Positions 5,403 to 61,641 of a stretch of 64,000 bases of DNA are shown here, one piece after another (position 1 is the first letter of the stretch; each line of letters starts with the position of its first letter). The DNA comes from Anaeramoeba ignava BMAN (taxonomy: Eukaryota; Protista; Anaeramoebae). Location of the stretch: the NCBI GenBank assembly GCA_028826165.1, contig JAPDFW010000132.1:1-64000 (forward strand). Direction: 5' to 3'. The notes beneath the pieces are model-generated. The model saw nothing but the letters and a program-made list of their open reading frames with translations, was not told where the DNA came from and searched no databases. A program made the translations under genes and the position numbers.

Positions 5403-5658
5403 TTAAAAGAAAAAAAATGAAAAAACAAAATCCAATTTTTCGAAATTTTTTAAATTAATTTTTATAAATAAATTTTATAAATCAATTTTTTAAATCAATT
5501 TGTAATTAAGTTTATAAATTAATTAGTAATTAAGTTTATAAATAAATTGTAAATCAAATTGTAAATTAATGTCAGAAGAAAAATAATCAAAAAGAAAAAT
5601 GGTGATTTGGTTCAAAAAAAAAAATAAATTCATTTTTTCATTTTTTTTATCGCTTCAA

Positions 5659-25000: not shown

Positions 25001-27556
25001 TCTTTATTGATTCATCCTGATTTATTTTGGAATGTTGTTTTTCTCCTTCAAAGAGAAAACATGTTTGTTTTTGAACATGCTTTGAAATTATTTGATATTA
25101 TTCTTGGAATAGGAATCAATAATAATGAAATTATTCAGGTTCTTTCTGCCTCAATGCCTTTAAAATGGTATAATAGAAAAGAACAATGAAAATAAAAATA
25201 ATAATAATAATAACGAAAATAATAATGAAAATAATCTATATATTATTTAAACAGGGAAATTCCATTTTTGGGAATACAACAACTTATTTTACGTGGATTG
25301 GCTTCTTCTTTCTCTCTTAATACAACAAAATTAATATTCCGTGTATTAAAACAAATGATAATGATTGAATCAGATAAAATTATTGAAAAAAATAGCAAAA
25401 GAATATTATCAAATCTTATTGGAACTCTTCCTTGGATTTGCAAATCAATTGATAACCAAAACCAACATAAAATTCTGGATTATGTGAAAAATTTATCAAT
25501 TCAATTGAAAAAATATGGATTTAATAATCTTTCCCAATTTTTTGAAAGCTTTCCTGAATTTAATTTTGGGAATTCTAAAGAATTTTTACAAAAAATGGAA
25601 CCAATATTTTGCAAAACATTTTTTCCTGAAAATTATCCAATTGTGATGAAATTTTATCTTAATTTAATTTCAAATGGAAATGAAGATTACAAAATTGAAT
25701 ACATTAGAATTTTATACCATTTGATTGCTAACCAAAACATGAATAATTTTGATTTCCAAATATCCTATTTAAATTCAATTATGGAATTATCAAAAAAGAA
25801 ATGCGCAAAGGAAATATCAAAATTACTTGATTTATTAATGAAATTAACAAATGAAAATTCAACAACACCAACAAATCTTCATCTTGAAGTTAATCCAACA
25901 ATTGAAAATGAACCAAGTATTTCTTTAAAAGAAAATGAAAAGGAAAAAGAAAAGGAAAAGGAAAAAGAAAAAGAAAAAGAAAATAATCAAAATATTACTT
26001 CATTTCGTTCAGTTTCAAACGATGATGCAATTTTAAGAGAATGGGTTATCCCAGATTCACAATCAATTCAAATTCCAAACAATTTTTTCACTGCTAAAAC
26101 CAAACAAAGTCCCAAAAGAGACGAAAAAACCAAAGTGAATATTGTTGATGATACAAGTTTGGGAGAAATGAGTTCAACAAATTCTGAACTTGTTTCTGTT
26201 GTTGAAGGACATATTACATCAGAAGCATTTGATCCAAATGATCTTTCTGATTTGATTACAAATTCAGACTATTTTAGCAATATTCTTTCTGGAAATGATA
26301 CACAAACATCAGATAATGAAGTTGCAGATATTTTGTTTACTTCAAGAGAAAAAGAAAAACAAGAAAGAACAATCCAAGCATTTGAAAAGCATCTCCAAAA
26401 ACAAATTGAAAATGAAGCTCAACAAACAACTGATGAAACTACTTTAACTGAAGAAAATATTGTTTATACATCTTCTCCATATTTTATATCAAGTAAAAAA
26501 GATCGTTTTGTTTCTTTTGAGGATTTAGAACGTGAACTTTCTTTTTCTAATATTGAAGATTTTGAAATTCCAACAAAATTCCAAAATGAATCAAATTCAA
26601 ATTCAAATTCAAATCCAAATTTGAAACAAAAATCCAATTTAGATTCAAATTTAGATCAAAATTTAAATTCAAATTTAAATTTAAATTTAAAATTAAATGA
26701 AGAAGATGATAGAAAATTCATTGAAGATTTAAGATTCATTGAGAATTTAATTGAAAATGAGAATGGAAATGAAAACGAAATTGAAAATGAAAATGAAAAT
26801 CAAAATCAAAATCAAAAATTAGATGATCCAGAAATAATTGAAATTATAAAAGAAGACACAAAAATAAAATTGAATGAAAAAAAAAATCAAAACAAAAATT
26901 ACAAAAAAAATGGAAATTTTAATGATTTACCTTCTTTATTGAAAATTTTCAATTCAATTACAAAATTTTTGAAAGCAAAAATCAAAGAATACACAATACA
27001 ATATCAGAAAACAATTGAAATTATTAAGAATGAAAATTTCAAACAATTAATTCAAGAAAAAGTTATCAATCCAGTATTTTTTGCAACTTGTTTTCTGAAA
27101 AAATTACAATTAGATCCATTAACAGATGAATATAAAAAAATATGTGAAATAATGAATAAAATACAAGTCAAAACACCAACAAAAATGGAAAATTTTAAAT
27201 TACAAAGAAAAAAGCATTTGAAATTAGTTAAAGAAAGTTTATTTAATTACAATTCAAAATCAAGACAAACTGAAGAATTTATTTTCTTTATATCTGCAAA
27301 TTCTGATATGAAAGAAAAGCAAAATTTAGTTGAATTTTCTTTATGTAATTCTATTTTAAATCAACATTATCAGTTAATGATACTTTATCGTTCTTATTTA
27401 GATTTTTATAATGTTTTGTTTCAAATTCTTGAACCTGATTTATCTTTATCTCATTCTGAAGGTTTATGTCATGAAAATATTCAAATGAATAGAGTTTTAG
27501 TAAAAAAGCTTGAATTAATTCAGATGAAAATGCAATCAAAAAACGAGAAAAATTAA
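16003..27556 (+). CDS. FRY: Furry/Tao3/Mor2 (PAG1) cell-morphogenesis scaffold, ~17 exons, ~2480 aa
   Basis: LKALIDWRE, RLCGNVIEELSK, HPDRVLLGLRTF and FPFLGIQQLILRGLASS resemble conserved Furry blocks. The ORFs at 16706, 20250, 22972, 23730, 24290 and 25268 join through in-phase GT-AG introns. Confidence 0.82.
18200..18745. repeat. (aattcaatattc/aattc)n satellite in Furry intron 18144-18788
   Basis: Direct inspection; flanked by TTTC|GTAAAT and TCTAG|AA. Confidence 0.85.
20690..22945. repeat. 18-bp minisatellite (aaattaatatttaaattc)n filling the 2.3-kb Furry intron 20670-22968
   Basis: More than 100 near-perfect units; source of the spurious LNINLN ORFs. Confidence 0.92.
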
Positions 27557-40735: not shown

Positions 40736-43596
<2,861 letters not shown>

Positions 43597-43767: not shown

Positions 43768-45216
43768 TTAAATGAAGAAAGTTTCAAGTTCTTCAACTTT
43801 CCATGAAGAATAAGAACCAGCTAAATAATTTTTAGTTTCATTTGAAAATAATTCAATTTCATTAGGAATATTATAAGAATATCCAAAACTAGAATAACCA
43901 GATTTTAAATCAGAATCTAAACTGAAATCATGTCCAGCTCCAAAACTTGGACCTTTTCGAGAATAATTATAATAAATTGAATGTTCTTCTTTTCCTTTTT
44001 TAATTGTAAATTTTTCAGGTTTTCTATTATTCTTATCATTTCTTAATGAAAAAATAAATGCATTTTTATCTGGAATAAATCCATTATTATATCTTCTATC
44101 ATTTTCTTTCCATTTTGATTTATCATTTGTAAATCCAATTTGTGTAAATCCTCCAAAAATAAAATTATCTTTTGTTTTAATAATAATTAGTGTTTTTCCT
44201 TTATTATCACAAATTGAATGCCATTTTTGAGAATCAAATCCATCTTTTTTTGCTGAAAATCCTTTTTTCATTTTGTAAAAGAATTCATTATCATTTATCC
44301 ATTCTTTTAATTTCTTGAAATGTTTAATTTCTTCAATAATTATTGATTTAAATTTAAATCTTGATTTGAAAATAAATAAATTTTCATTTTGAATAAATTT
44401 ATCTAATTCTTTTTCATCTTCTTGAAGTTTTTGGAATTGAATTAATTTTTGTGAAATTTGATTTGGAATTAAATCTTGTTTCAAAGTATCTTCAAGTTCT
44501 TCTTTTGAAAAATCAATAAATCTGATTTTTTCAATAATATTTGAAATTTGTTTTTGTAATTGTTCTTCTTCTTCATTTTCTTTTTCTTGATTAATATTTA
44601 ATTTATGTTTTCCCCATTTTATTATTGATTGGAAAAGTTCAAATTCATTTGTTAAAAGGATATCATTTGATAATATTAAATTTAAATGATTTTCTTCAAG
44701 TTCAAGAAAAAATGAAGTTTTGATAAATTTTGTAAAATTTTCAAAAATAAATTGATAAGAAAAATCCAATAAATGATTTAAGTTCATTGATTCAGATAAT
44801 TTAAGAACATCAATAATAGTTTCAATTTGTAAATTCTTTTTGATAAAATTTGAAGAAATTTCAATTAATTCATCAATTAAATATTTTGATGAAAAAATTA
44901 AAATTTCAATAACATTTTCTGAATTAATTTCAATTTTTCCTGAATAAAAATAATTCAAAATTGAAAATAGAATTGAACTTGAAACATCTTTTAGAATTAA
45001 TTTATTTTCTTGATATTCTTTCATTTTGGATTTGAAAAGAGTTTTAAAATATTCACTTCTTGAAGAAAGAATTGATTTATGAGTTTTAAATGAAATTTGA
45101 TTTTGTTCACAATTTATTTCAAAATCAAAATAACTTTCTTCTTGATTTTGATTTTGATTTTGAAATAAATTTTTTAAATCATTTGAAAGTTTTTCTAAAT
45201 TTAAATAATTTTCCAT
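43768..45216 (-). CDS. BTB-BACK-TLDc protein, copy 1
   Basis: BTB motif FKTHKSILSSRSEYF...YFYSG; BACK motif EFELFQSIIKW...IRF; TLDc motif KDGFDSQKWHSICDNKGKTL...FGGFT...AFIFSL...GPSFG...LETF. Confidence 0.9.
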   Translation of the reverse strand: MENYLNLEKLSNDLKNLFQNQNQNQEESYFDFEINCEQNQISFKTHKSILSSRSEYFKTLFKSKMKEYQENKLILKDVSSSILFSILNYFYSGKIEINSENVIEILIFSSKYLIDELIEISSNFIKKNLQIETIIDVLKLSESMNLNHLLDFSYQFIFENFTKFIKTSFFLELEENHLNLILSNDILLTNEFELFQSIIKWGKHKLNINQEKENEEEEQLQKQISNIIEKIRFIDFSKEELEDTLKQDLIPNQISQKLIQFQKLQEDEKELDKFIQNENLFIFKSRFKFKSIIIEEIKHFKKLKEWINDNEFFYKMKKGFSAKKDGFDSQKWHSICDNKGKTLIIIKTKDNFIFGGFTQIGFTNDKSKWKENDRRYNNGFIPDKNAFIFSLRNDKNNRKPEKFTIKKGKEEHSIYYNYSRKGPSFGAGHDFSLDSDLKSGYSSFGYSYNIPNEIELFSNETKNYLAGSYSSWKVEELETFFI

Positions 45217-45810
45217 TTTTAAAATAAAAATGAAAAAAATAAAAAAAATGAAAAAAAATGGATTTTAAATTTTTTTTGCTTTTGATTTTTGCTTTTGTTT
45301 TTTGTTTTTTGTTTGATCATTGATTTTAAAACTGATTTTAAAATTGATTTTAAAACTGATTTTTGTTTGATCATTGATTTTAAAACTGATTTTAATTTTC
45401 AAATTGAATAATTGAAAAAAATTGAAAAAAAATTGAAAAAAAAATTAAATTTAAAATCAACAAGATCATTTTTTTCTCATTTTTTCTAATTTTTTCTAAT
45501 TTTTTTTCTTTTCTTTTGTTTCTTTTGTTTCTTTCAGCATTAATTTGTAATTTTACCAATTCAAAAAACAATCCCAATAATCCAAATAACTCAAAAAACA
45601 AACCAAATAACAATCCAAAAAACAATCCAAAATAAATAAAAAATAATTAAAAAACAATTTAAAAATAACTCAAAAACAATTCAAAAAATAATTAAAAAAT
45701 AATTTAAAAATAAATCAAAAAACAACTCAAAAAACAAATTCAAAATAAATTTAAAAATAAATTTGTTTCTTTTTCTTTTATTTAATTAAAAAAAAAAAAG
45801 CAAAAAAAAA

Positions 45811-47898
45811 ATGAACAAAACTTCCTTCTTTTTAATCCTTTTAATAATTTTAACAACACAAATTGGGAAAGTATCAACAAAATTATTCGAAACTATTCCA
45901 GGAAACTTTACACAATTAGATATACTTACAGAACCATCAACTCAAGATTATGGAAGAAGTTCTTCAGTTTTCAATGATGTAATTATAGTTGGAGATTCAT
46001 TTACAATGCAAGTTTTTATCTACAGATGCAACGGATCAACATTTATTTTAGAACAAACATTAAGTGAACCAAGTGCGAAATTTGGATTTAGTTCATCAAT
46101 TTCAGGAAATGTAATTGTTGTTGGTTCAAATGAATCACAAGAAGTATTCGTTTACAGATATAATGGATCATATTGGAATCTTGAAGAGAATTTTTCAGGT
46201 TCGATTGGATATGGATTTAGTGTTTCAGTTGATGAAGATGTTATTGTTGTTGGAGCTTGTGGTTCAAAACAAGCATTTATTTACAGATATAATGGATCTA
46301 ATTGGAATCTTGAAGAGAACTTGTCTCAAAATTTAGATGGTTATGGAAATGCTGTTGCAGTTTCAGGTGATGTTAGTGTTATTTCAGCAAATTTATCCAA
46401 ACAAGCATTTATTTACAGATATAATGGATCTAATTGGTTTATTGAACAAAATTTTACTGGTGGTTCTTATGGGTATTTGGGAACTGATGTTGCAACTTCA
46501 GGTGATGTTGTTCTTATTTCAGATATTTGGAATGATATAGTATGGGCTTATCGATATTCTGAAGGAAATTGGACTTTGGAGCAAACAATTATTTATACAG
46601 GAGTTGGTGGATCAGGATTAGAAAATCAAAATCAAAATCAAAATCAAAATCAAAATCAAAATCAAAATCAAAATCAAATTCCAACATTATCAGGAGAATT
46701 TGATTTTGGTTCATCCCTTTCAATTTCAGGTGATTTTATTGCTGTTGGAGCTGATGCCACATGTATATTTTTTTACCAATATTATTCAGATCAATGGAAT
46801 AAAACATTTGGATACAAGATAATTCAAACAAATGAACATGTGACTGCAGGAATTTCGGGAATTATTGGTGTTTGGGGAGTTACATTCTCAAATCAAGCAT
46901 TTGTTTATGCAATGGTTCCACCAACAATTAATTTGATAAATTGTAGTTCACTTTATTCTTCATTTGAATGTTATTGGAATGAAACTGATTATCCATTTCC
47001 ACTTTATTATCAAATAGATTATGGAGTTGGATGGCAAATTATGGAAGAACCAATTATTTTAGAAGGAAATATTTCTTATCAAATATTCAATTCATTTTAT
47101 CCAAATATAACTGGAAATGCGAATTATTCAATAATAATTCAAGCTTGTGAACCTGTTTCAAAATTATGTGGAACTCAATCTTCACAAATTGATTTAACAA
47201 CAAGAATTCCTGTTGTTCAAAATTTAACTTTTGTTTCAACAAATGAATCAATCAATGTTACTTGGAATCCACCAAATGTTACAATGGATGGAGAAATTCC
47301 AGATCTTGATCATTATTTGATTACTTATTATCAAGAGAATGAATTAAGTATTACAAATATCACAGTTGACAATACAACAACTTCATTTGAAATGACTTCA
47401 TTAGATTGTGGAACAACTTATTATTTTGCAATTTATGCTTGTAGAACATTAGCATGTTTAGGAGATGATATGGGAGCATTATTTTCAACAACAATAGATA
47501 CAATGTTTGGCCCAGTTTATTTACTTCAATGCTCAAGTCATCCTTTATCAATTTCATGTAGTTGGCTTATTCCAGTTAATTGCGCTAATAATCCATTTTT
47601 TTACTCATTCAGTTTTCAATCAAGTTCAGGAATAGATTCAGGTTCATTTTTAGTTAATGGAACATCTACTTCTTTTAATACACAATATGATGATGAAGAT
47701 TATTTCATTCAAGTTTCTGCTTGTGATGATTATTTTAGTTGTGGAGAAAGTAGTTTATCATCTGCACAACCTGGAACATTAACAAGTAGTAATTCTACTT
47801 CAAAAAGTATAATTACTATTTCGGTATTGTTTCTTGTTTTAGGATTTATCTTTTTGGTTGGAGCATTTTGCATTGTTAACAAACACCTTCATTTTTAA
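45811..47898 (+). CDS. Type I membrane protein, copy 1: signal peptide, ~7 FG-GAP-like propeller blades, 3 Cys-containing FN3-like domains, TM helix, 7-aa tail
   Basis: Repeats of (F/Y)GxSvsisGdvivvG...vfIYRYnGs.W.lEq; FN3-like motifs (INVTWNPP, Y.I.Y, L.CGTTY.F.I.AC); hydrophobic N- and C-terminal segments. Confidence 0.8.
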   Translation: MNKTSFFLILLIILTTQIGKVSTKLFETIPGNFTQLDILTEPSTQDYGRSSSVFNDVIIVGDSFTMQVFIYRCNGSTFILEQTLSEPSAKFGFSSSISGNVIVVGSNESQEVFVYRYNGSYWNLEENFSGSIGYGFSVSVDEDVIVVGACGSKQAFIYRYNGSNWNLEENLSQNLDGYGNAVAVSGDVSVISANLSKQAFIYRYNGSNWFIEQNFTGGSYGYLGTDVATSGDVVLISDIWNDIVWAYRYSEGNWTLEQTIIYTGVGGSGLENQNQNQNQNQNQNQNQNQIPTLSGEFDFGSSLSISGDFIAVGADATCIFFYQYYSDQWNKTFGYKIIQTNEHVTAGISGIIGVWGVTFSNQAFVYAMVPPTINLINCSSLYSSFECYWNETDYPFPLYYQIDYGVGWQIMEEPIILEGNISYQIFNSFYPNITGNANYSIIIQACEPVSKLCGTQSSQIDLTTRIPVVQNLTFVSTNESINVTWNPPNVTMDGEIPDLDHYLITYYQENELSITNITVDNTTTSFEMTSLDCGTTYYFAIYACRTLACLGDDMGALFSTTIDTMFGPVYLLQCSSHPLSISCSWLIPVNCANNPFFYSFSFQSSSGIDSGSFLVNGTSTSFNTQYDDEDYFIQVSACDDYFSCGESSLSSAQPGTLTSSNSTSKSIITISVLFLVLGFIFLVGAFCIVNKHLHF

Positions 47899-48010
47899 AA
47901 TCTTTCTTTTTCCAAAAAATTCAAATCAAAATCAAAATCAAATTCAAAATCAAAATCAAAATTCAAATCAAAATCAAATAAAATTCAAAATCAAATTTTA
48001 TTTTTAATTT

Positions 48011-49456
48011 TTAAATGAAAAAAGTTTCAACTTCATCAACAAACCATTGATTAAAAGAACCAGCTAAATAATTTTTAGCTTCATTTGAAAATAATTCAAT
48101 TCCATTAGGAGTATTATAAGTATGACCAAAATTTGAGCATCCAGTTTGTAAATCTTGTTTCAAATAAAAATCTGAACCAGCTCCAAAATTTGGTCCTCTT
48201 AAAAAATGAAAATAGATAGCATATTGAGAAAATTCTTTTTTAATTGTAAATTTCTCAGGTTTTCTATCATTTTTATCATTTCTTAATGAAAAAATAAATG
48301 CATTTTTATCTGGAATAAATCCATTATTATATCTTCTATCATTTTCTTTCCATTTTGATTTATCATTTGTAAATCCAATTTGTGTAAACCCTCCAAAAAT
48401 GTAATTATCTTTTGTTTTGATAATAATTAGTGTTTTTCCTTTATTATCACAAATTGAATGCCATTTTTGAGAATCAAATCCATCTTTTTTTGCTGAAAAT
48501 CCTAGTCGCATTTTGTAAAAGAATTCATTATCATTTATCCATTCTTTTAATTTCTTGAAATGTTTAATTTCTTCAATAATTATTGATTTAAATTTAAATC
48601 TTGTTTTGAAAATAAATAAATTTTCATTTTGAATAAATTTATCTAATTCTTTTTCATCTTCTTGAAGTTTTTGGAATTGAATTAACTTTTGTGAAATTTG
48701 ATTTGGAATTAAATCTTGTTTTAAAGTATCTTCAAGTTCTTCTTTTGAAAAATCAATAAATCTTATTTTATCAATAATATTTGAAATTTGTTTTTTTAAT
48801 TGTTCTTCTTCTTCATTTTCTTTTTCTTGATTAATATTTAATTTATGTTTTCCCCATTTTATTATTGATTGGAAAAGTTCAAATTCATTTGTTAAAAGGA
48901 TATCATTTGATAATATTGAATTTAAATGATTTTCTTCAAGTTCAAGAAAAAATGAAGTTTTGATAAATTTTGTAAAATTTTGATAAATAAATTGATAAGA
49001 AAAATCCAATAAATGATTTAAGTTCATTGATTCAGATAATTTAAGAACATCAACAATAGTTTCAATTTGTAAATTCTTTTTGATAAAATTTGAAGAAATT
49101 TCAATTAATTCATCAATTAAATATTTTGATGAAAAAATTAAAATTTCAATAACATTTTCTAAATTAATTTCAATTTTTCCTGAATAAAAATAATTCAAAA
49201 TTGAAAATAGAATTGAACTTGAAACATCTTTTAGAATTAATTTATTTTCTTGATATTCTTTCATTTTGGATTTGAAAAGAGTTTTAAAATATTCACTTCT
49301 TGAAGAAAGAATTGATTTATGAGTTTTAAATGAAATTTGATTTTGTTCACAAATTATTTCAAAATCAAAATAATTTTCTTCTTGATTTTGATTTTGATTT
49401 TGAAATAAATTTTTTAAATCATTTGAAAGTTTTTCTAAATTTAAATAATTTTCCAT
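48011..49456 (-). CDS. BTB-BACK-TLDc protein, copy 2
   Basis: Near-identical to copy 1 except for the last ~75 aa. Confidence 0.9.
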   Translation of the reverse strand: MENYLNLEKLSNDLKNLFQNQNQNQEENYFDFEIICEQNQISFKTHKSILSSRSEYFKTLFKSKMKEYQENKLILKDVSSSILFSILNYFYSGKIEINLENVIEILIFSSKYLIDELIEISSNFIKKNLQIETIVDVLKLSESMNLNHLLDFSYQFIYQNFTKFIKTSFFLELEENHLNSILSNDILLTNEFELFQSIIKWGKHKLNINQEKENEEEEQLKKQISNIIDKIRFIDFSKEELEDTLKQDLIPNQISQKLIQFQKLQEDEKELDKFIQNENLFIFKTRFKFKSIIIEEIKHFKKLKEWINDNEFFYKMRLGFSAKKDGFDSQKWHSICDNKGKTLIIIKTKDNYIFGGFTQIGFTNDKSKWKENDRRYNNGFIPDKNAFIFSLRNDKNDRKPEKFTIKKEFSQYAIYFHFLRGPNFGAGSDFYLKQDLQTGCSNFGHTYNTPNGIELFSNEAKNYLAGSFNQWFVDEVETFFI

Positions 49457-49508
49457 TTTTAAAATAAAAAAAATGAATTTTAAATTTTCATTTTTTTCAT
49501 TTCAAAAA
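49457..49508. promoter_or_regulatory. 52-bp bidirectional promoter with back-to-back TTCATTTT motifs
   Basis: Entire space between divergent ATGs at 49456 and 49509; near-identical to 55917-55967. Confidence 0.6.
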
Positions 49509-51332
49509 ATGAATGACTGTTTATTTTTTGGTTCAAATCAATATCCAAAACTTATCAAAAATAAACTACAAAAAATAACAAAACCAACTCAATTTAAATT
49601 TGAAAATGAAAATGAAAATGAAAATGAAAAACAAATTAAGCAAATTTCAACAGGAAATTTTTCAATAATTTTCCTTTTTAAAAATGGAAAAGCAATAGAA
49701 TATTTAAAATATTCAAATCAAAATCCTGAAAAAATCCAAATTGAAGAAAATATTCAAAAAGTAACTGCAGGCTCTTATAATGAAGCTATTTTAACAATAG
49801 AAGGAAATGTATTTGCCAAAGGAGAAAATATTAATCCAGAAAAGGCAAATAAATTTATCAATATTTCATCATTAATTGAAGATAAAAAAGATAGAATAAT
49901 TGAAGATATTATTTCTGGTTATAGTTCAATTTACTTATTAACTTCAAATCAAAATGCTTATGGAATTGGTTCAAATCAATATGGTCAACTTGGTTTTGAT
50001 TCTGAAACACTTAAAAGAAAAGAAAAGCCAATTTTAATGATGAAAAATGTTTCTAAAATATTTTCAGGAATTTCTTCAAATCATGTTTTTCTTTTAAATT
50101 CAAATCAAGAATTATTTGTATGCGGATATAACGAATATGGTCAACTTGGATTAGGAGAATCAAGAAAAGAAGAAACAAAAATCAAAAAATTAACCAAAAT
50201 CCAAAATATTCCAAAAGGTAAAATAATTGATATTCAATGTGGATATCTTCATTCAATAATGTTGATTGAAAATGAAGATGGGAAAAGAAAACTTTATTCA
50301 TGTGGATATTATTCATTTAATGGACTTGGCAAAAATCGTGATGAACATACTTATGGATTTACTGAAATCAAATCATCTTTATTTGAAAATAATGATAATA
50401 TTCTTGAATTTTCTTGTGGAAATTCACATACTTTGATTTTAACTTCAAATGCGAAGTTAATAGGATTTGGAAGTAATTATTATGGTCAATTAGGAACTGG
50501 AAATACAGAAGATCAATCAATTCCAATTCAAATTGAACTTCCTAAATTAAGATTTAATGAAAATATTTCTAATTATCATATTTCTTGTGGATTGAACAAA
50601 TCATTCTTTTATTATTCTTCTCCTTCCTTTTCCAATCTTGAAGAAGATTTGATAAAATTATTTAGAAGAAAAGAATTTTGCGATATTTCATTTAAAACAA
50701 AAAATGGAGAAATAATTGAAGCTCATAAATTAATATTGAAATATAGATTAAATCAAAATCAAAATGAAATTGAAAAACTTCAAGAAATTATTTCAAAAAA
50801 ATCAATTAAAGAATCAAATCAAATATTTGAAATGATTTATTCAAACAATTCCAAAATAAATCCAAAATTATATTCTGAAATTAAAGAAATTATAAATTTA
50901 AATGAAAAAATTGAAGAAACAATTAAAAGAATTTATTTAAATAAAAATGAAAATGAAAAAGATTTTATAATTGAAAGAAAAGAAAAACAATATAAATTTC
51001 CAAAATTAATATTAATAATGAGAAGTGAATTATATCGAGGAATGTTTTTATCTGTTATAAATGATAAATCTAATAAAGTTACAGATTATAGTGAATTAAG
51101 TAATAAATCATTTCAAATATTTGAATATTGGATTTATTCAAATCAAATTAAAGATGAAATTCAAATTACACAAGAAATAATTGATGAAATTCAAATTGGA
51201 ATTGATTATTTTCAATTAAATCAAACAAATCCAAATTTATTTGATTTATTAATTAACAAATTTAATAATCAAAATTACAAGAAGAAAGAAGAAAAGAAAG
51301 AAGAAAAGAAAGAAAAATGTTTAATTTTTTAA
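49509..51332 (+). CDS. RCC1-repeat propeller + two BTB-like domains + charged tail ending in CaaX (KCLIF), copy 1
   Basis: GxNxYGQLG and CGxxHS/T RCC1 motifs; FCDISF...AHKLIL and KDFII...FPKLILIMRSELYR BTB motifs. Start MNDCLFFG is shared with paralogs. Confidence 0.88.
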   Translation: MNDCLFFGSNQYPKLIKNKLQKITKPTQFKFENENENENEKQIKQISTGNFSIIFLFKNGKAIEYLKYSNQNPEKIQIEENIQKVTAGSYNEAILTIEGNVFAKGENINPEKANKFINISSLIEDKKDRIIEDIISGYSSIYLLTSNQNAYGIGSNQYGQLGFDSETLKRKEKPILMMKNVSKIFSGISSNHVFLLNSNQELFVCGYNEYGQLGLGESRKEETKIKKLTKIQNIPKGKIIDIQCGYLHSIMLIENEDGKRKLYSCGYYSFNGLGKNRDEHTYGFTEIKSSLFENNDNILEFSCGNSHTLILTSNAKLIGFGSNYYGQLGTGNTEDQSIPIQIELPKLRFNENISNYHISCGLNKSFFYYSSPSFSNLEEDLIKLFRRKEFCDISFKTKNGEIIEAHKLILKYRLNQNQNEIEKLQEIISKKSIKESNQIFEMIYSNNSKINPKLYSEIKEIINLNEKIEETIKRIYLNKNENEKDFIIERKEKQYKFPKLILIMRSELYRGMFLSVINDKSNKVTDYSELSNKSFQIFEYWIYSNQIKDEIQITQEIIDEIQIGIDYFQLNQTNPNLFDLLINKFNNQNYKKKEEKKEEKKEKCLIF

Positions 51333-51359
51333 ATTAAAATTAAAATTAAAATCAAAACA

Positions 51360-51930
51360 AAATTAAAAGAGGAATTGATTATTTTCAATTAAATCAAACA
51401 AATCTAAATTTATTTGATTTATTAATTATTAAATTTAATAATCAAAATTTAAAGAAAAGAAAGAAGAAAAGAAAGAAAAATGTTTAATTTTTTAAAAAGA
51501 AATTTAAATTAAAATTAAAATTGGAATTGATTATTTTCAATTAAATCAAACAAATCCAAATTTATTTGATTTAATAATTAAAATTTAAAGAAAAGAAAGA
51601 AGAAAAGAAAGGAAAATGTTTAATTTTTAAAATTAAAATTAAAAACAAAATTAAAAGAGGAATTGATTATTTTCAATTAAATCAAACAAATCCAAATTTA
51701 TTTGATTTATTAATTAATAAATTCAATAATCAAAATTACAAAAAGAAAGAAGAGAAGAAAGAAGAAAAGAAAGGAAAATGTTTAATTTTTTAAAAAGAAA
51801 TTTAAATTAAAATTAAAATTGGAATTGATTATTTTCAATTAAATCAAACAAATCCAAATTTATTTGATTTAATAATCAAAATTTAAAGAAAAGAAAGAAG
51901 AAAAGAAAGAAAAATGTTTAATTTTTTAAA
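51360..51930 (+). repeat. Four tandem copies of the 3' end (GIDYFQLN...KCLIF*) of the RCC1-BTB gene
   Basis: ggaattgattattttcaattaaatcaaacaaat begins at 51371, 51523, 51659 and 51821; each copy ends in aaatgtttaattttt(t)aa. Confidence 0.9.
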
Positions 51931-52179
51931 AAGAAATTATTAATGAAATTGGAGAATGATGAGCTGTAAAAGTATCAAAAAAAAACTAATTTATTTAATT
52001 TTTTATTTTTTCATTTTTTCATTTTTTGCTTTTTTAAAATTTTATTTTACAAATTAAAGAAAAAAAAAGTAAGAAAAAAAATAAAAAAGAAAAAAAATTT
52101 TTTGTTTTATTGATTACTTATTAATTTTTGAATTAATTTTATAAAACAAAAAAATAGTTTAAAAAAAAAAACACTCAAA

Positions 52180-54366
52180 ATGAAAAAACATACAATCTTT
52201 TTAATTATTTTGATAATTTTAATTGAACAAATTGGAAAAGTATCATCTCAATATGCAGATTCATCACCAGTTTCATTTACTTTTATTGATGAAATGACGG
52301 ATCAACTTGCGGGATTTGGACAAACTGTATCAGTTTCAAATGATGTAATGATAGTTGGAAGTCCATATTTTGGAGTTTTGATTTATAGATTTGATGGAAT
52401 AACATTTGTTTTAGAACAATCTATAAATGAACTAAGTATACAATTTGGATATAATGTTGCACTTGATGAAGAAGTATTTGTTGTTTCAGCTTATGATACA
52501 CATGAAATATTTATTTATAGATATAATGGATCATATTGGGATTTTGAAGCAAATTTTAGTGAAAATGTTGATGGTTATGGAAATGATGTTTCAATTTCAG
52601 GAAATGTTATTGTTGTTTCATCTTATAATAATCAACAAATATTCATTTATAGATATGATGGAAATAATTGGTTTTTTGAAGATGATTTTTTTGAACCAAC
52701 ACCTGGTTATGGAAATTGTGTTGCAGTTTCTGGAGATGTTATTGTTGTTTGTGCTTATGATAGTACTCAAGTATTCACTTATAGATATAGTAATTTAATT
52801 TGGGTTTTCGAACAAAATATTGTTGAATCAAATGGATTTGGATATTGTGCTGCAATTGAAAATAATCTTATGCTTATTGGTTCATTTGATAATGATACTG
52901 TTCAAGTTTATAGATATTATAATGGAAATTGGAATTACAATGATTACATTGAAGTTACTCCACTCCCTCAAGAAAATCAAATTCAAAATCAAAATCAAAA
53001 TCAAAATTCAAATCAAAACCAAAATCAAAATTCAAATCAAAATTCAAATCAAAATCAAAATCAAATTCAAATTCAAATTCAAAATCAAAATTCAAATCAA
53101 AATCAAAATCAAAATCAAATTCAAAAATCAAATTCAAAATCAAATTCAAATTCAAAATTGGGAATATTTCAATTTGGTTCATCCGTTTCAATTTCAGGTG
53201 ATATTATTGCTATTGGACAAAATTCAATAACCGCAATTTATTTGTACCAATATTATTCTAATGACTGGCATTTACAATATGCCAACACTTCACTTTGTTC
53301 ACCTGCACCAGTAAGTGTTTCAATTTCAAGAAATATTGGTGTTCTTGGAGTAGGAAATTGTATGGAAGTTGATGTTTATACAGCTTTTCCACCAACAATT
53401 AATTTGATAAATTGTAGTTCACTTTATTCTTCATTTGAATGTTATTGGAATAAAATTGATTATCCATTTCCAGTTGAGTATCAAATAGATTATGGAATTG
53501 GATGGCAAATTATGGAAGAACCAATTATTTTAGAAGGAAATATTTCTTATCAAATATTCAATTCATCTTATCCAAATATAACTGGAAATGCAAATTATTC
53601 AATAATAATTAAAGCTTGTGAACCTGTTTCAAAATTATGTGGAACTCAATCTTCACAAGTTGATTTAACAACAAGAATTCCTGTTGTTCAAAATTTAACT
53701 TTTGTTTCAACAAACAATTCAATCAATGTTACTTGGAATCCACCAAATGTTACAATGGATGGAGAAATTCCAGATCTTGATCATTATTTAATTACTTATT
53801 ATCAAGATAATGAATTAAGTATTACAAATATCACAGTTGACAATACAACAACTTCATTTGAAATGACTTCATTAGATTGTGGAACAACTTATCATTTTTC
53901 AATTTATGCTTGTAGAACATTAGAATGTTTAGCTGATGATATGGGACAAGTTTTTGAAACAACAATAGAAACAGTTTTTGATGAAGTTTATTTACTTCAA
54001 TGTTCAATGCTTTATGTTCTTGTGGTTTCATGTAGTTGGATTTCCCCAATTACTTGTTCTAACAATGCAACATCTTATATTTTCAGTTATCAATCAAGTT
54101 CAGGAACAGATTCAGGTTCATTTTTAGTTAATGGAACATCTACTACTTTTCTTGCTAAAATTGAAGATGAAAATTATAATGTTCAAGTTTCTGCTTGTAA
54201 TCGTGATCTTAATTGTGGAGAAGTTACTTTATCATCTAGTAAATCTGGATTAGAACCTTCACAAACTACTAAAAATTTAATGATAACTTCAGCAATTTTT
54301 CTTATTTTTGGATTTGTCTTTTTAATTGGATCTTTTATTTTTGTCAGAATAAGATTTCCTTTTTAA
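52180..54366 (+). CDS. FG-GAP-propeller/FN3/TM surface protein, copy 2
   Basis: Same architecture as 45811-47898; central FN3 region almost identical. Confidence 0.8.
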   Translation: MKKHTIFLIILIILIEQIGKVSSQYADSSPVSFTFIDEMTDQLAGFGQTVSVSNDVMIVGSPYFGVLIYRFDGITFVLEQSINELSIQFGYNVALDEEVFVVSAYDTHEIFIYRYNGSYWDFEANFSENVDGYGNDVSISGNVIVVSSYNNQQIFIYRYDGNNWFFEDDFFEPTPGYGNCVAVSGDVIVVCAYDSTQVFTYRYSNLIWVFEQNIVESNGFGYCAAIENNLMLIGSFDNDTVQVYRYYNGNWNYNDYIEVTPLPQENQIQNQNQNQNSNQNQNQNSNQNSNQNQNQIQIQIQNQNSNQNQNQNQIQKSNSKSNSNSKLGIFQFGSSVSISGDIIAIGQNSITAIYLYQYYSNDWHLQYANTSLCSPAPVSVSISRNIGVLGVGNCMEVDVYTAFPPTINLINCSSLYSSFECYWNKIDYPFPVEYQIDYGIGWQIMEEPIILEGNISYQIFNSSYPNITGNANYSIIIKACEPVSKLCGTQSSQVDLTTRIPVVQNLTFVSTNNSINVTWNPPNVTMDGEIPDLDHYLITYYQDNELSITNITVDNTTTSFEMTSLDCGTTYHFSIYACRTLECLADDMGQVFETTIETVFDEVYLLQCSMLYVLVVSCSWISPITCSNNATSYIFSYQSSSGTDSGSFLVNGTSTTFLAKIEDENYNVQVSACNRDLNCGEVTLSSSKSGLEPSQTTKNLMITSAIFLIFGFVFLIGSFIFVRIRFPF

Positions 54367-54463
54367 TCTTTTTTTTTCCAAATTTCTTTTTTTCTTTTTC
54401 CAAATTTCTTTTTCTTTTTCAAAATTCAAATTCAAATTCAAAATCAAATTTTATTTTTAATTT

Positions 54464-55916
54464 TTAAATGAAAAAAGTTTCAAGTTCATCAACAATCCAT
54501 TTATCATAAGAACCAGCTAAATAACTTTTAGCTTCATTTGTATCATATTTAATTCCATTAGGAGTATTATAAGAATATCCAAAATTTGTATAACCACCTT
54601 GTAATTTAGAATTTAATCGAAGATCACTTCCTGATCCAAAAAATGGACCCTCAGTTAAATCAGATAAAATTGCATAATTTGTTTGATTTTTGTTAATTGT
54701 AAATTTTTCAGGTTTTCTATTATTCTTATCATTTCTTAATGAAAAAATAAATGCATTTGGATCTGGAATATATCCCCAATTACTTCTTCTATCATTTTGT
54801 CTCCATTTTGATTTATTCATTGTAAATCCAATTTGAGTAAATCCTCCAAAAATAAAATTATCTTTTGTTTTGATAATAACTAATGTTTTTCCTTTATCAT
54901 CACAAATTGAATGCCATTTTTGAGAATCAAATCCATCTTTTTTTGCTGAAAATCCTTTTTTCATTTTGGAAAAGAATTCATCATCATTTATCCATTCTTT
55001 TAATTTCTTAAAGTATTCACTTTTTTGAATAATTTCTGAAGAATTCAAACTAACTCTTGTTTTGAAAATGAATAAATTTTCATTTTGAATAAATTTATCT
55101 AATTCTTTTTCATCTTCTTCTTGAATTTTTTGGAATTGAATTAACTTTTGTGAAATTTGATTTGGAATTAAATCTTCTTTTAAAGTATCTTCAAGTTCTT
55201 CTTTTGAAAAATCAATAAATCTTATTTTATCAATAATATTTGAAATTTGTTTTTGTAATTTTTTCTTTTTTTCATTTTCTTTTTCTTGATTAATATTTGA
55301 TTTATGTTTTCCCCATTTTATTATTGATTGGAAAATTTCAAATTCTTTTATTAAAATTTTCCCATTTAATAAAATTGAATTTAAATGATTTTCTTCAAGT
55401 TCAAGAAAAAATGAAGTTTTGATAAATTCTTGAAAATTATCAAAAATAAATTGATAAGAAAAATCCAATAATTGATTTAAGTTCATTGATTCAGATAATT
55501 TAAGAACATCAATAATAGTTTCAATTTGTAAATTATTTTTGATAAAATTTGAAGAAATTTCAATTAATTCATCAATTAAATATTTTGATGAAAAAATTAA
55601 AATTTCAATAACATTTTCTGAATTAATTTCAATTTTTCCTGAATAAAAATAATTCAAAATTGAAAATAGAATTGAACTTGAAACATCTTGAAGAATTAAT
55701 TTATTTTCTTGATATTCTTTCATTTTTGATTTAAAAAGATTTTTAAAATATTCACTTCTTGAAGAAAGAATTGATTTATGAGTTTTAAATGAAATTTGAT
55801 TTTGTTCACAAATTTATTTCAAAATCAAAATAATTTTCTTCTTGATTTTGGTTTTGATTTTGAAATAAATTTTTTAAATCATTTGAAAGTTTTTCTAAAT
55901 TTAAATAATTTTCCAT
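54464..55916 (-). CDS. BTB-BACK-TLDc protein, copy 3, with an apparent +1 frameshift near 55810-55815 (sequencing error or pseudogene)
   Basis: MENYLNLEKL start at 55916 matches the paralogs. Plus strand reads 'cacaaatttatttc' versus 'cacaatttatttc' and 'cacaaattatttc' in copies 1 and 2. Confidence 0.8.
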
Positions 55917-55967
55917 TTTTAAAATAAAAAAAATGAATTTTAAATTTTCATTTTTTTCATTTCAAAA
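55917..55967. promoter_or_regulatory. 51-bp bidirectional promoter, second copy
   Basis: Matches 49457-49508 except for A-run length. Confidence 0.6.
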
Positions 55968-57808
55968 ATGAATGAAATTTTATTTTTTGGTTCAAATAAA
56001 TATCCAAAACTTTTCAAAAATGAACTAGATTCAATAAGAAAACCAACTCAATTTAAATTTGAAAATGAAAATGAAAATCAAATTAAAGAAATTGTTTCAT
56101 CAGGTTTTGCAACAATTTTCCTTTTTAAAAATGGAAAAGCAATAGAATATTTAAATGAAAATGATTCAAATGAACCTCAAAAAATCCAAATTGAAAATAT
56201 TCAAAAAGTAACTGTTGATAATTCAAATGAAGCTATTTTAACAAAAGAAGGAAATGTATTTGCAAAAGGAATGAATATTAATCCAAAAAATCCAAATAAA
56301 TTTATCAATTTGTCTGAATTAATTGAAGATACAAATGATAGAATAATTGAAGATATTATTTGCACAGCAGGTTCAGTTTATTTATTAACTTCAAATCAAA
56401 ATGTTTATCAAAATTTATCAAAGGATTCTGATTCATTTCGTTTTGGATTTGGATCATTTAAAGATTTTCCTGTTTTATTGGCTCCAAAATTAATTGATCC
56501 AAATCAAAACCCTTTGATTGATAAAAACAATGAATTAAATGATTCTGAAACAGATAAAGAGAAGAAAAAGCACATAATGGTTTTAATGATGAAAAATGTT
56601 TCTAAAATGTTTCCAGGAAATACTTCAACTTTAATTTTTCTTTTAAATTCAAATCAAGAATTATTTGAATACAAAAGTGGTGGCTTTGTTGATTTAGGAT
56701 TAACTCAATCAACTGAAATCAAAAAACCAACCAAAATCCAAAATATTCCAAAAGTAAAATAATTGATATTCAATGTGGAGCTTATCATTCAGTAATGATG
56801 ATTGAAGAAGAAGATGAAAATGAAAATGAAAATCCAAAAAGAAAACTTTATTCATGTGGAGATTATCTATATAATGGACTTGGCATAGATTATCCTGTTT
56901 ATGAATTTACTGAAATTAAATCATCTTTATTTGAAAATGATAATATTCGTGATTTTTCTGTTGGAGAAACTCATACTTTGATTTTAACTGAAAAAGGAAA
57001 ACTTCTTGGATTTGGTTCTAATTCTTTTTTCCAATTAGCTATTGAAAGGACTTCTTATGACCAAAGAATTCCAATCCAAATTGAACTTCCTAAATTGAAA
57101 TATGATATTTCCAATTATCATATTTCTTGTGGAGTGATTAAATCATTTCTTTATTATTCCCCTTTTCTTTCCAATCTTGAAGAAGATTTGATAAAACTAT
57201 TTAGAAGAAAAGAATTTTGCAATATTTCATTTAAAACCAAAAATGGAGAAATAATTGAAGCTCATAAATTAATATTGAAATATAGATTAAATCAAAATCA
57301 AAATGAAATTGAAAAACTTAAAGAAATTATTTCAAATAAATCAATTAAAGAATCAAATCAAATATTTGAAATGATTTATTCAAATAGAATTATAAATTCA
57401 ATATTATATTCTGAAATTAAAGAAATTATAAATTCAAATGAAAAAATTGAAGAAACAATTAAAAGAATTTATTTAAATGAAAATGAAAATGAAAAAGATT
57501 TTATAATTGAAAGAAAAGAAAACCAATATAAATTTCCTAAATTAATATTAATAATGAGAAGTGAATTATATCGAGGAATGTTTTTATCTGTTATAAATGA
57601 TAAATCTAATAAAGTTACAGATTATAGTGAATTAAGTAATAAATCATTTCAAATATTTGAATATTGGATTTATTCAAATCAAATTAAAGATGAAATTAAA
57701 ATTACACAACAAATTATTGATGAAATTAAAATTGGGATTGATTATTTTCAATTAAATCAAACAAATCCAAATTTATTTGATTTATTAATTAACAAATTTA
57801 ATAATTAA
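55968..57808 (+). CDS. RCC1-BTB-BTB protein, copy 2, no CaaX; apparent -1 frameshift near 56754
   Basis: 'ccaaaagtaaaat' versus 'ccaaaaggtaaaat' in paralogs joins the ORFs at 55968 and 56795. Confidence 0.78.
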
Positions 57809-58225
57809 AATTAAAATTAAAATCAAAATCAAAATTAAAATTAAAATTAAAATCAAAATTAAAATTAAAATTAAAATTAAAATTAAAATCAAAATCAATA
57901 TTAAAATTAAAATTAAAATTAAAATTAAAATTAAAATTAAAATTAAAATTAAAATTAAAATTAAAATTAAAATTAAAATCAAAATTAAAATCAAAATTAA
58001 AATCAAAATTAAAATTAAAATTAAAATTAAAATTAAAATTAAAATTAAAATTAAAATTAAAATTAAAATTAAAATTAAAATTAAAATTAAAATTAAAATT
58101 AAAATTAAAATTAAAATTAAAATTAAAATTAAAATTAAAATTAAAATTAAAATTAAAATTAAAATTAAAATCAAAATTAAAATTAAAATTAAAATTAAAA
58201 TCAAAATTAAAATTAAAATTAAAAA
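57805..58225. repeat. (aaaatt)n hexamer array between RCC1 paralogs
   Basis: About 70 units. Confidence 0.92.
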
Positions 58226-58271
58226 TCCAAAAAACATTTTTTCATTTTTTTCATTTTTTTCTTTTTTAAAA

Positions 58272-60143
58272 ATGAATGATTGTTTATTTTTTGGTGAAAA
58301 TAATTATCCAAAATTTTTCAAAAATAAACCAAATAAAATAATAAAACCAATTCAATTTAAATTTGAAAATGAAAATGAAAATGAAAATGAAAATGAAAAT
58401 GAAGATCCAATTCTTATCAAAAATGAACCAGATAAAATAAAAAAACCAATTCAATTTAAATTTGAAAATGAAAATGAAAATGAAAATGAAAAACAAATTA
58501 AACAAATTTCAATAGGTTGTTTTTCAATAACTTTCCTTTTTAAAAATGGAAAAGCAATAGAATATTTACCATTTTCAAATCAAAATCCTCATAAAATCCA
58601 AATTGAAGAAAATATTCAAAAAGTAACTGTTGGTTCTGGAAATGAAGCTATTTTAACAATAGAAGGAAATGTATTTGCCAAAGGAAAATATATTAATCCA
58701 AAAAATAAAAAAAATTTTATCAATATTTCATCATTAATTGAAGATACAAATGATAGAATAATTCAAGATATTGTTTCTGGAGCTAATTCAATTTACTTAT
58801 TAACTTTAAATCAAAATGTTTATGGAATTGGTTTAAATGATTTTGGTCAGGTTGGTTCTGATTCTGAAACACTTTATAAAACAGAAAAACCAATTTTAAT
58901 GATGAAAAATGTTTCTAAAATATTTTCAGGAAATTCTTCAATTCATGTTTTTCTTTTAAATCCAAATCAAGAATTATTTGGATGCGGATATAATCGATTT
59001 GGTCAACTTGGATTAGGAGAATCAAAAAAAGAAACAATAAAAATCCAAAAATTAACCAAAATCCAAAATATTCCAAAAGGTAAAATAATTGATATTCAAT
59101 GTGGATATATTCATTCAGTAATGCTGATTGAAAATGAAAATGAAAATCCAAAAAGAAAACTTTATTCATGTGGTTATTATGAATATAATGGACTTGGCAA
59201 AGATGAAGACATTTACGAATTTACTGAAATCAAATCATCTTTATTTGAAAATGATGATAATATTCTTGATTTTTCTTGTGGAAATGGTTATACTTTGATT
59301 TTAACTTCCAAATCAAAATTAATAGTATTTGGAAGTAATGAATTAGGACAACTAGGAACTGGAGATACAAAAAATCAATTAATTCCAATTCAAATTGAAC
59401 TTCCTAAATTAAGATTTAATGAAGATATTTATAATTATCATATTTCTTGTGGAAATTACAAATCATTTCTTTATTATTCTCCTTTCCTTTCTCCTTTTCT
59501 TTCTAATCTTGAAGAAGATTTGATAAAATTATTTAGAAGAAAAGAATTTTGTGATATTTCATTTAAAACAGAAAATGGAGAAATAATTGAAGCTCATAAA
59601 TTAATATTGAAATATAGATTAAATCAAAATCAAAATCAAATTGAAAAACTTCAAGAAATTATTTCAAAAAAATCAATTAAAGAATCAAATCAAATATTTG
59701 AAATGATTTATTCAAACAATTCCAAAATAAATCCAAAATTATATTATGAAATTAAAGAAATTATAAATTCAAATGAAAAAATTGAAGAAACAATGAAAAG
59801 AATTTATTTAAATGAAAATGAAAATGAAAAAGATTTTATAATTGAAAGAAAAGAAAAACAATATAAATTCCCTAAATTAATATTAATAATGAGAAGTGAA
59901 TTATATCGAGGAATGTTTTTATCTGTTACAAATGATACTTCTAATAAAGTTACAGATTATAGTGAATTAAGTAATAAATCATTCCAAATATTAGAATATT
60001 GGATTTATTCAAATCAAATTAAAGATGAAATTCAAATTACACAAGAAGTAATTAATGAAATTCAAATTGGAATTGATTATTTTCAATTAAATGAAACATA
60101 TCCAAATTTATTGGATTTATTAACTAACAAATTTAATAATTAA
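58272..60143 (+). CDS. RCC1-BTB-BTB protein, copy 3, intact, no CaaX, duplicated N-terminal segment
   Basis: 623-aa ORF collinear with copy 1. Confidence 0.88.
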   Translation: MNDCLFFGENNYPKFFKNKPNKIIKPIQFKFENENENENENENEDPILIKNEPDKIKKPIQFKFENENENENEKQIKQISIGCFSITFLFKNGKAIEYLPFSNQNPHKIQIEENIQKVTVGSGNEAILTIEGNVFAKGKYINPKNKKNFINISSLIEDTNDRIIQDIVSGANSIYLLTLNQNVYGIGLNDFGQVGSDSETLYKTEKPILMMKNVSKIFSGNSSIHVFLLNPNQELFGCGYNRFGQLGLGESKKETIKIQKLTKIQNIPKGKIIDIQCGYIHSVMLIENENENPKRKLYSCGYYEYNGLGKDEDIYEFTEIKSSLFENDDNILDFSCGNGYTLILTSKSKLIVFGSNELGQLGTGDTKNQLIPIQIELPKLRFNEDIYNYHISCGNYKSFLYYSPFLSPFLSNLEEDLIKLFRRKEFCDISFKTENGEIIEAHKLILKYRLNQNQNQIEKLQEIISKKSIKESNQIFEMIYSNNSKINPKLYYEIKEIINSNEKIEETMKRIYLNENENEKDFIIERKEKQYKFPKLILIMRSELYRGMFLSVTNDTSNKVTDYSELSNKSFQILEYWIYSNQIKDEIQITQEVINEIQIGIDYFQLNETYPNLLDLLTNKFNN

Positions 60144-60268
60144 AATCAAAATTAAAATTAAAATCAAAATTAAAATTAAAATTAAAATTAAAATTAAAAT
60201 CAATTGGAGTAGCAAATAATAATTAAAAAAACATTTTTACTTTTTTTTTTCATTTTTTTATTTGGCAA

Positions 60269-61641
60269 ATGAATGATTGTTTATTTTTTGGTGAGAACCA
60301 AGATCCAATTCTTATAAAAAATAAACCAGATAAAATAACAAAACCAATTCAATTTAAATTTGAAAATGAAAATGAAAATGAAAATGAAAATGAAAATGAA
60401 AATGAAAATGAAAATGAAAAACAAATTAAACAAATTGCATCAGGTTTGTTTGGAACAATTTTCCTTTTTAAAAATGGAAAAGCAATAGAATACCTAAGAG
60501 AAAATGATTCAAATCAAAATCCTCAAAAATCCAAATTGAAGAAAATATTCAAAAAGTAACTGTTGGTGTTGGAAATGAAGCTATTTTAACAATAGAAGAA
60601 AATGTATTTGCTAAAGGGAAAGATATTAATCCAGAAAATACAAAAGAATTTATCAATATTTCATCATTAATTGAAGATACAAATGATAGAATAATTCAAG
60701 ATGTTTTTTCTGGAGCTCATTCAATTTACTTATTAACTTCAAATCATAATGTTTATGGATTTGGTGATAATGAATATGGTCAACTTGGTTCTTATTTTGA
60801 AACACTTGAAAGAACAGAAAAACCAATTTTAATGATGAAAAATGTTTCTAAAATTTTTACAGGAAGTAATTCAAATCATGTTTTTCTTTTAAATTCAAAT
60901 CAAGAATTATTTGGATGCGGATTAAATAGGCATGGTCAATTTGGATTAGGAGAATCAATAAAAGAAAAAAAAATCGAAAAATTAACTCAAATCCAAAATA
61001 TTCCAAAAGGTAAAATAATTGATATTCAATGTGGACAATTTCATTCAATAATGTTGATTGAAAATCAAAATGAAAATCCAAAAAGAAAACTTTATTCATG
61101 TGGGAATTATGAATATAATGGACTTGGCAAAAATAAAAATATTTATGAATTTACTGAAATCAAATCATCTTTATTTGAAAATGATAATATTCTTGATTTT
61201 TCTGTTGGATTTGAACATTTTTTGATTTTAACTTCTAAAGCAAAAATGATTGGGTTTGGTATAAGTGATTATTGTGAATTAGGAAATGGAAATACAGAAT
61301 ATGCACCAATTCCAATTCAAATTGATCTTCCTAAATTGAAATATGATATTTCCAATTATCATATTCTTTGTGGAGTTTATAAATCATTTCTTTATTATTC
61401 TCCTTTTTTATTTAATAATCAAAACCAAATTGAAAATCAAAATCAAAACAATCAAAACAACCAAAATCAAAACAATCAAAACAACCAAAACAACCAAAAC
61501 AATCAAAACCAAAACCAAAACCAAAACCAAAACCAAAACCAAAACCAAAACAATCAAAACAATCAAAACAATCAAAACAACCAAAACAACCAAAACAATC
61601 AAAACCCGAAAAAAGGAAAAAAAAAGTGTTCAATTTTTTAA
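60269..61641 (+). CDS. RCC1-repeat protein, copy 4: no BTB domains, N/Q linker, polybasic CaaX (KKGKKKCSIF); apparent frameshift in an A-run near 60526-60530
   Basis: 'cctcaaaaatcc' versus 'cctcaaaaaatcc' in copy 2. The sequence downstream stays collinear with the paralogs. Confidence 0.78.

Follow-up and report, generated by a model that had tools for sequence, protein, structure and literature searches.

Nine gene-sized units that lie side by side in the genome of Anaeramoeba ignava, an anaerobic amoeba of the metamonads that harbours bacterial symbionts (PMC11550330), raise the question whether genes from three unrelated families are held together as a dedicated recognition system or were copied together because they happened to be neighbours. 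The units are located at 43768-61641 of the window, the stretch of 64,000 nucleotides analysed here (C133:1-64000; C numbers denote contigs), and they comprise three BTB-BACK-TLDc genes, two receptor genes with an FG-GAP propeller and an FN3 stalk, and four genes of the RCC1-BTB family. The initial annotation had described a tandemly amplified three-gene cassette that would form a coupled system. The analysis makes it probable, at a fairly high level of confidence, that the block arose when neighbouring members of three large dispersed families were duplicated locally and is not a dedicated cassette; a coupled triplet is not supported. The near-chance frequency of the junctions, the mixed orientations and the varied neighbours argue for co-residence of expanded intronless families and not for a fixed unit.

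Distribution of the three families in the genome

The assembly comprises 42.8 Mb in 147 contigs and is AT-rich. Genome-wide linkage was assessed from gene coordinates together with 60 loci (L001-L060) with 1.5-kb flanks. RCC1-BTB genes were counted by matches to a 30-base motif and TLDc genes by matches to a start motif, with zero control matches, and both counts are lower bounds that include fragments. The genome was found to encode at least 1,259 RCC1-BTB copies, at least 189 BTB-BACK-TLDc copies and about 63 FG-GAP/FN3 receptor loci, a ratio of about 1259:189:63. Locus tags run to about 14,800, and RCC1-BTB genes would thus constitute roughly 8% of all A. ignava genes, about one in twelve. 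The terms BTB and RCC1 are absent from the main text of the A. ignava genome paper (PMC11550330), and no description of the Anaeramoeba RCC1-BTB, BTB-BACK-TLDc and receptor families was found in the literature. RCC1 copies form short head-to-tail runs on many contigs, therefore the run of three such genes at the end of the array (RCC1b, RCC1c and RCC1d) is ordinary.

Recurrence of the triplet at other loci, as would be expected of a coupled system, was not observed. The tail-to-tail junction of receptor and TLDc gene matches at full length in three places in the genome, two in the window and one at C135, and the three receptors concerned form one small divergent receptor subclade (SH-aLRT 96). 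At C135, which is thereby the only site of this junction outside the window, no RCC1 gene is present within 1.5 kb upstream of the TLDc gene. A TLDc gene lies within 2 kb of three of the 61 other receptor loci (C135, C55 and C75; coordinates compared by eye) and the remaining 58 have no mapped TLDc gene in this range; at C100 a further receptor follows a TLDc gene. The three to four receptor-TLDc neighbours observed compare with 1.6 expected (P 0.08-0.21). The neighbours of TLDc genes, recorded at 27 loci, include ankyrin-BTB genes (four) and F-box genes (two), besides other TLDc genes, actin, Ras, NMT, Med6 and Tim44, and no transposons were seen beside the genes of the three families at the loci read. 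The ankyrin-BTB family is a frequent neighbour (L039, L040, L045 and L056) and may represent another expanded adaptor repertoire; at L034 a TLDc gene is positioned between two actin genes.

Structure of the array and of the duplicated block

The array consists of the following features, given with coordinates in the window.

43768-45216, minus strand: TLDc1, intact BTB-BACK-TLDc gene of 482 amino acids, a gene-sized extra copy (Pfam domains, self-alignment)
45811-47898, plus strand: Rec1, receptor with signal peptide, FG-GAP propeller, FN3 stalk, one transmembrane helix and a tail of 7 amino acids
48011-49456, minus strand: TLDc2, intact BTB-BACK-TLDc gene of 481 amino acids with M-K-E at the phi-x-E position
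49457-49508: head-to-head spacer between TLDc2 and RCC1a, 52 bp, which contains an upstream TTTTCATTTT motif for each of the two genes and recurs at 55917-55967
49509-51332, plus strand: RCC1a, seven-bladed RCC1 propeller, two BTB-like domains, lysine/glutamate-rich tail and CaaX end (CLIF)
51345-51931, plus strand: four extra tandem copies of the 3' end of RCC1a (~45 codons, with the CaaX terminus), spaced by 136-163 bp, non-coding
52180-54366, plus strand: Rec2, second FG-GAP/FN3 receptor, tail of 6 amino acids
54464-55916, minus strand: TLDc3, BTB-BACK-TLDc copy disrupted by one extra base near 55811 (+1 frameshift), either a pseudogene or an assembly error
55968-57808, plus strand: RCC1b, RCC1-BTB copy with a frameshift (-1) near 56753, without CaaX
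57794-58224, no strand: AAAATT tandem array of about 72 copies
58272-60143, plus strand: RCC1c, intact RCC1-BTB gene with an internal 99-bp duplication near its start, without CaaX
60269-61641, plus strand: RCC1d, propeller followed immediately by an Asn/Gln tail and a CaaX end (CSIF), BTB pair absent, frameshift (-1) near 60527

The order and orientation of the nine units were as initially annotated, and the domain assignments agree with Pfam, which reports BTB, BACK (E 2e-12) and TLD, FG-GAP_2 and fn3, and RCC1 and BTB, respectively. The period of ~6.4 kb was likewise reproduced, with offsets between the units of 6369, 6460 and 6459 bp. A propeller, BTB domains and a CaaX box, by which the RCC1 member of the cassette had been named, occur together in RCC1a alone (one of four); judged from the C-terminal residues, the array contains a CaaX end in RCC1a and RCC1d only, for which prenylation is predicted. 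Three of the nine genes (TLDc3, RCC1b and RCC1d) carry frameshifts in the assembly, in all cases at short homopolymers. The frameshifts may be assembly errors, since the assembly was built from Nanopore reads and polished with Illumina reads (PMC11550330). The one public run, of unknown type, is dominated by paralogues.

Self-alignment of the window reveals a duplicated block, 46623-49961 against 53094-56408 with 86% identity, that spans the 3' half of the receptor, the TLDc gene and the start of the RCC1 gene. TLDc1 and TLDc2 are similar only from 14 bp upstream of the ATG to the stop codon. Because TLDc1 is a gene-sized copy only and RCC1c and RCC1d are extra tandem genes, the full triplet exists in two copies and not in three. 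The intergenic junctions had been described as kept: the TLDc/RCC1 spacer is identical between both units except for one base, and the tail-to-tail junction of receptor and TLDc gene is retained in part.

The two units diverge unevenly. TLDc1 and TLDc2 are 96% identical at the amino acid level in BTB-BACK and 83% in TLDc, with a synonymous divergence (dS) of 0.02 and 0.22, respectively; Rec1 and Rec2 are 45% identical in the propeller and 79% in the stalk; and the propellers of RCC1a and RCC1b are only about 70% identical, RCC1b being no nearer to RCC1a than dispersed copies are (71-81%). By segment, dS between the units amounts to 0.02-0.10 in BTB, BACK and FN3, 0.2-0.5 in the propellers and 0.13-0.26 in the TLDc domains. 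These shifts in synonymous divergence point to mosaics and not to uniform duplicates, with segments exchanged after duplication. Isolated 3' fragments of RCC1-BTB genes were found beside TLDc or receptor genes (L050:1149-1450, L051:1151-1408, L021:3664-3820 and L022:3260-3883), as expected if recombination occurs at the conserved BTB end. The C135 locus was considered as an allele of the window locus and rejected, as its receptor is 82% identical and its upstream flank differs.

Alternative explanations for the linkage

Several observations weigh against local duplication of dispersed neighbours as the full explanation. RCC1 genes adjoin receptors at 9 of 26 loci, a 3-6 fold enrichment depending on the null, and TLDc genes on 8 of 54 sides, a 2-3 fold enrichment depending on the null; orientations are mixed in both cases, and the families thus co-cluster 2-6 fold above chance. 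At C86:269190-275212 a TLDc gene on the minus strand, a 1.9-kb unread gap, an RCC1-BTB-CaaX gene and a receptor, both on the plus strand, follow each other in the order of the middle of the array; the C86 receptor is 43% identical to Rec1 and a member of the main clade, and among independent loci this one comes closest to the window order, as a loose match only. C24:629421-649650 harbours four tandem pairs of TLDc and RCC1 genes arranged head-to-head. Finally, the common spacer of 52 bp could force co-transcription of TLDc2 and RCC1a.

The last two points lead to an alternative in which TLDc and RCC1 genes arranged head-to-head are co-regulated from one minimal bidirectional promoter, with the receptor as a passenger. 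The spacer is conserved in both units, and ten true junctions of this kind were found at six loci including the C24 array (one additional match was discounted, not being a TLDc start). These ten of 189 TLDc genes are close to the 4-8 expected, however, and the spacer is composed of two copies of a motif that precedes nearly every TLDc and RCC1 gene: TTTTCATTTT is found 10-50 bp upstream of the ATG (L031-L060), and the genes are packed 50-60 bp apart. We take this motif to resemble the Trichomonas initiator. Moreover, spacer lengths differ at other loci, and tandem and tail-to-tail arrangements of TLDc and RCC1 genes are also present. Such partial coupling is regarded as unlikely.

It is very unlikely that the whole triplet is a coupled cassette, in which a ligand is sensed by the receptor, the RCC1-BTB-CaaX and BTB-TLDc proteins linked to it act downstream and the linkage is under selection. 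This explanation can draw on the two triplet units with their retained junctions, on the third receptor-TLDc pair at C135, and on C86 and the co-clustering. It is opposed by the unequal family sizes, by the 58 receptor loci that lack a nearby TLDc gene, by the distance between the RCC1a and RCC1b propellers, and by the second unit, which carries two frameshifts and no CaaX box in the assembly. The predicted co-phylogeny of the partners was not found either: quick trees gave ((Rec1,C135),Rec2) for the receptors, C135:93593-95771 being the closest Rec1 paralogue with 82% identity, and ((TLDc1,TLDc2),TLDc3) with the C135 TLDc outside this local clade for the TLDc genes, and the RCC1 family shows no tree-like linkage. 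The cytoplasmic tails of Rec1 and Rec2 (7 and 6 amino acids) compare with a family median of about 29 amino acids. Most receptors end in a basic and then acidic tail with a common EKEL..DLD(I/L) motif, a possible sorting signal, that is absent in Rec1 and Rec2; loss of the family-typical tail weakens a direct link to cytosolic adaptors.

Conservation of the system in related species was not observed, as no A. flamelloides receptor was present among 104 matches of a length-limited search. Close homologues of the receptors are confined to A. ignava, and the next relatives are distant bacterial or metagenomic FG-GAP proteins. The receptors most likely constitute a separate surface-binding family. 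For the RCC1-BTB family an A. flamelloides relative was found, a protein of 1590 amino acids with 34% identity. The outcome that the initial annotation had itself set against a coupled system, a passive segmental duplication with random linkage elsewhere, largely describes the findings, with the co-clustering and the C86 look-alike as caveats. Of its proposal that the families co-duplicated and diversified at binding surfaces, local co-duplication and the variability of RCC1 and TLDc domains next to a conserved BTB end stand, and the coupled system does not.

Variable and constant domains of the two putative adaptor families

The variability of the RCC1-BTB family was determined from 113 proteins picked by similarity to RCC1a. 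An entropy of at least 2 bits was reached at 33 of 287 propeller positions and at none of the 218 BTB positions. An AlphaFold model shows a seven-bladed RCC1 propeller with predicted local distance difference test (pLDDT) scores of mostly 85-97 and a BTB region with scores below 50; the best Foldseek matches of the propeller are RCC1, HERC2 RLD, RPGR and UVR8. Most of the variable sites fall at two places in every blade, the turn that connects strands A and B (GxxH) and the beginning of the loop that follows strand C (GxNxxG), and they align with W-R of the GWRHT motifs of UVR8. From the propeller topology and from the binding face of UVR8, we assume that these sites form one partner-binding face. 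They are occupied by Tyr (21%), Ser (14%), Asn (10%), Phe (10%) and Asp (7%), and a distinct combination was found in 112 of the 113 proteins. Among 54 biallelic sites of intermediate frequency, linkage is gone beyond 3 codons (r-squared near 0.01, 99% four-gamete pairs), which fits pervasive short-tract conversion; recurrent mutation towards A could contribute. The uncorrected ratio of nonsynonymous to synonymous differences (pN/pS) is 1.3-1.4 at variable sites against 0.8-0.9 elsewhere, values that are near saturation and derive from few DNA copies without a codon model. A CaaX terminus is present in 19 of 120 family members, about one in six. P0185, an RCC1-BTB protein, is annotated as a fusion with a Rho/Rac GTPase domain.

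In the BTB-BACK-TLDc family the same partition was observed, with an entropy of at least 2 bits at 63 of 197 TLDc positions and at 1 of 130 BTB positions. The uncorrected pN/pS at the top variable sites is 1.5, with the same limits of saturation, few copies and no codon model. Between 89 and 90 of 95 members carry M-K-E at the phi-x-E position, which aligns to L-K-E of KLHL22 and KBTBD4. Because of this canonical motif and the BACK domain, BTB-BACK-TLDc proteins are likely to bind Cul3. In RCC1-BTB proteins the phi-x-E register reads T-x-D, with D invariant in 113 of 113 (RCC1a has I-N-D), and no BACK match was obtained with Pfam; these BTB domains appear degenerate and their Cul3 binding is putative. 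About nine cullin loci of unassigned type are present in A. ignava. No match to a TLDc structure in the PDB was obtained by sequence.

Two other mechanisms were rejected. A diversity-generating retroelement target does not agree with variable sites that include E, Q, K, W and M and with 42% of codons ending in A or G, and neither a template repeat nor a reverse transcriptase was seen in the window. Retrocopying of TLDc genes was dismissed, poly(A) tails and shared boundaries being absent in 30 TLDc flanks; for RCC1 genes it is still conceivable, because 5'-truncated RCC1 fragments exist. A mostly selfish or neutral amplification of the families, driven by retrocopying or recombination, with variable sites that reflect relaxed constraint and AT-biased recurrent mutation, agrees with the many fragments and frameshifts, with a whole-gene pN/pS of 0.5-0.9 outside the variable sites and with many biallelic sites of the type E/K, D/N or Q/K that recurrent change to A could yield, but it is highly improbable in view of the clean TLDc flanks, the same two loop positions varying in all seven blades with other surface loops fixed, the 10-17 residues per variable site enriched in Tyr, Phe, Trp and Ser with GC-rich codons, and a pN of 0.51 at variable sites against a background pS of 0.15.

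Proposed origin and function

The history of the locus is reconstructed as follows. Three independently expanded, intronless and dispersed families came to lie side by side at the window locus. The receptor-TLDc pair has a single origin and was copied, twice in the window and once to C135, the block in the window also carrying the start of an adjacent RCC1-BTB gene. Duplicates of individual TLDc and RCC1 genes were added, and later exchange of segments with paralogues produced the mosaics. Unequal crossing-over and gene conversion may have copied neighbours passively, since the genes are compact, each with its core upstream motif no further than about 50 bp away, and over 1,200 near-identical RCC1-BTB copies provide homology across the genome. 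Each gene is most likely an independent member of the repertoire of its own family.

The most likely role of the RCC1-BTB and BTB-BACK-TLDc proteins is that of cytosolic adaptors for substrate recognition, in which the constant BTB end would serve cullin binding or self-assembly and the variable end would bind foreign or fast-changing ligands. For these adaptors a role in defence or symbiont control is plausible, with the balance tilting slightly in its favour, and the best guess for their ligands, by analogy with nematode adaptors (PMC4334554), is proteins of prey, symbionts or invaders. A more far-reaching reading, in which about a tenth of the genes of this free-living protist encode continually reshuffled, antibody-like intracellular binders for innate immunity or symbiont control, with about 30 randomised positions on one face of the propeller, a constant BTB scaffold and short-tract conversion as the diversifier, is tentative and rather doubtful; it has no need of a triplet cassette.

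Further genes of the window

Upstream of the array the window contains a nucleotide-sugar transporter gene (5599-6729), a gene of the glutamate dehydrogenase family (8464-9960), an open reading frame of 1372 amino acids without Pfam match (10153-14271) and pieces of a MOR2-PAG1 (Furry-like) gene (16706-27556). TLDc1 (43768) lies tail-to-tail with the last exon of a V-ATPase subunit B gene (42916-43596). TLDc proteins are V-ATPase interactors (PMC8608904); with 189 TLDc copies in the genome, this adjacency is probably due to chance.

Relation to known systems and significance

In nematodes, F-box and MATH-BTB adaptor families have expanded by birth-death turnover, and detection of foreign proteins was proposed as their function (Thomas, 2006, PMID 16825662, as cited in PMC4334554). 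The nematode and plant F-box and MATH-BTB expansions resemble the A. ignava families in their large size, birth-death turnover, a conserved cullin-side domain and a diversified substrate-side domain. In A. ignava, by contrast, variation falls on an RCC1 propeller or a TLDc domain, some members carry a CaaX box, cullin binding is putative, and the copies are 80-86% identical with linkage lost over a few codons. Rhizophagus irregularis, likewise a symbiosis-associated microbial eukaryote with high-copy BTB genes, has BTB/POZ, Kelch, Sel1 and kinase families of high copy number, some of whose genes are arranged in tandem, with an uneven distribution in the genome (PMC8647823). It differs in its partner domains and in the Mutator-like elements near the genes (PMC8647823), of which none were seen at the A. 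ignava loci read.

Among individual proteins, RCBTB1, RCBTB2 and IBTK (PMC4447969 for IBTK) also combine an RCC1 propeller with two following BTB domains, but they are low-copy and conserved, whereas the A. ignava domains are degenerate, with T-x-D in place of phi-x-E and nothing BACK-like thereafter. The BTB-BACK part of the TLDc family can be aligned with KLHL22 and KBTBD4, the L/M-K-E motif included; compared with KLHL and KBTBD proteins, the Kelch propeller is replaced by TLDc, which is hypervariable. The Pfam TLD domain is shared with the TLDc interactors of V-ATPase (PMC8608904), and its hypervariability argues against one conserved target such as V-ATPase. The receptors resemble integrin-alpha-like and bacterial FG-GAP proteins in signal peptide, FG-GAP_2 repeats, extracellular stalk and single transmembrane helix, and differ in that their stalk is made of FN3 domains.

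The triplet itself carries little weight, being an outcome of passive duplication in a genome in which RCC1-BTB genes make up about a twelfth of the total. To our knowledge, the RCC1 propeller scaffold has not been known as a variable receptor. The RCC1-BTB family presents itself as a natural binder library and as a testable candidate for host recognition of prey, symbionts or intracellular invaders.

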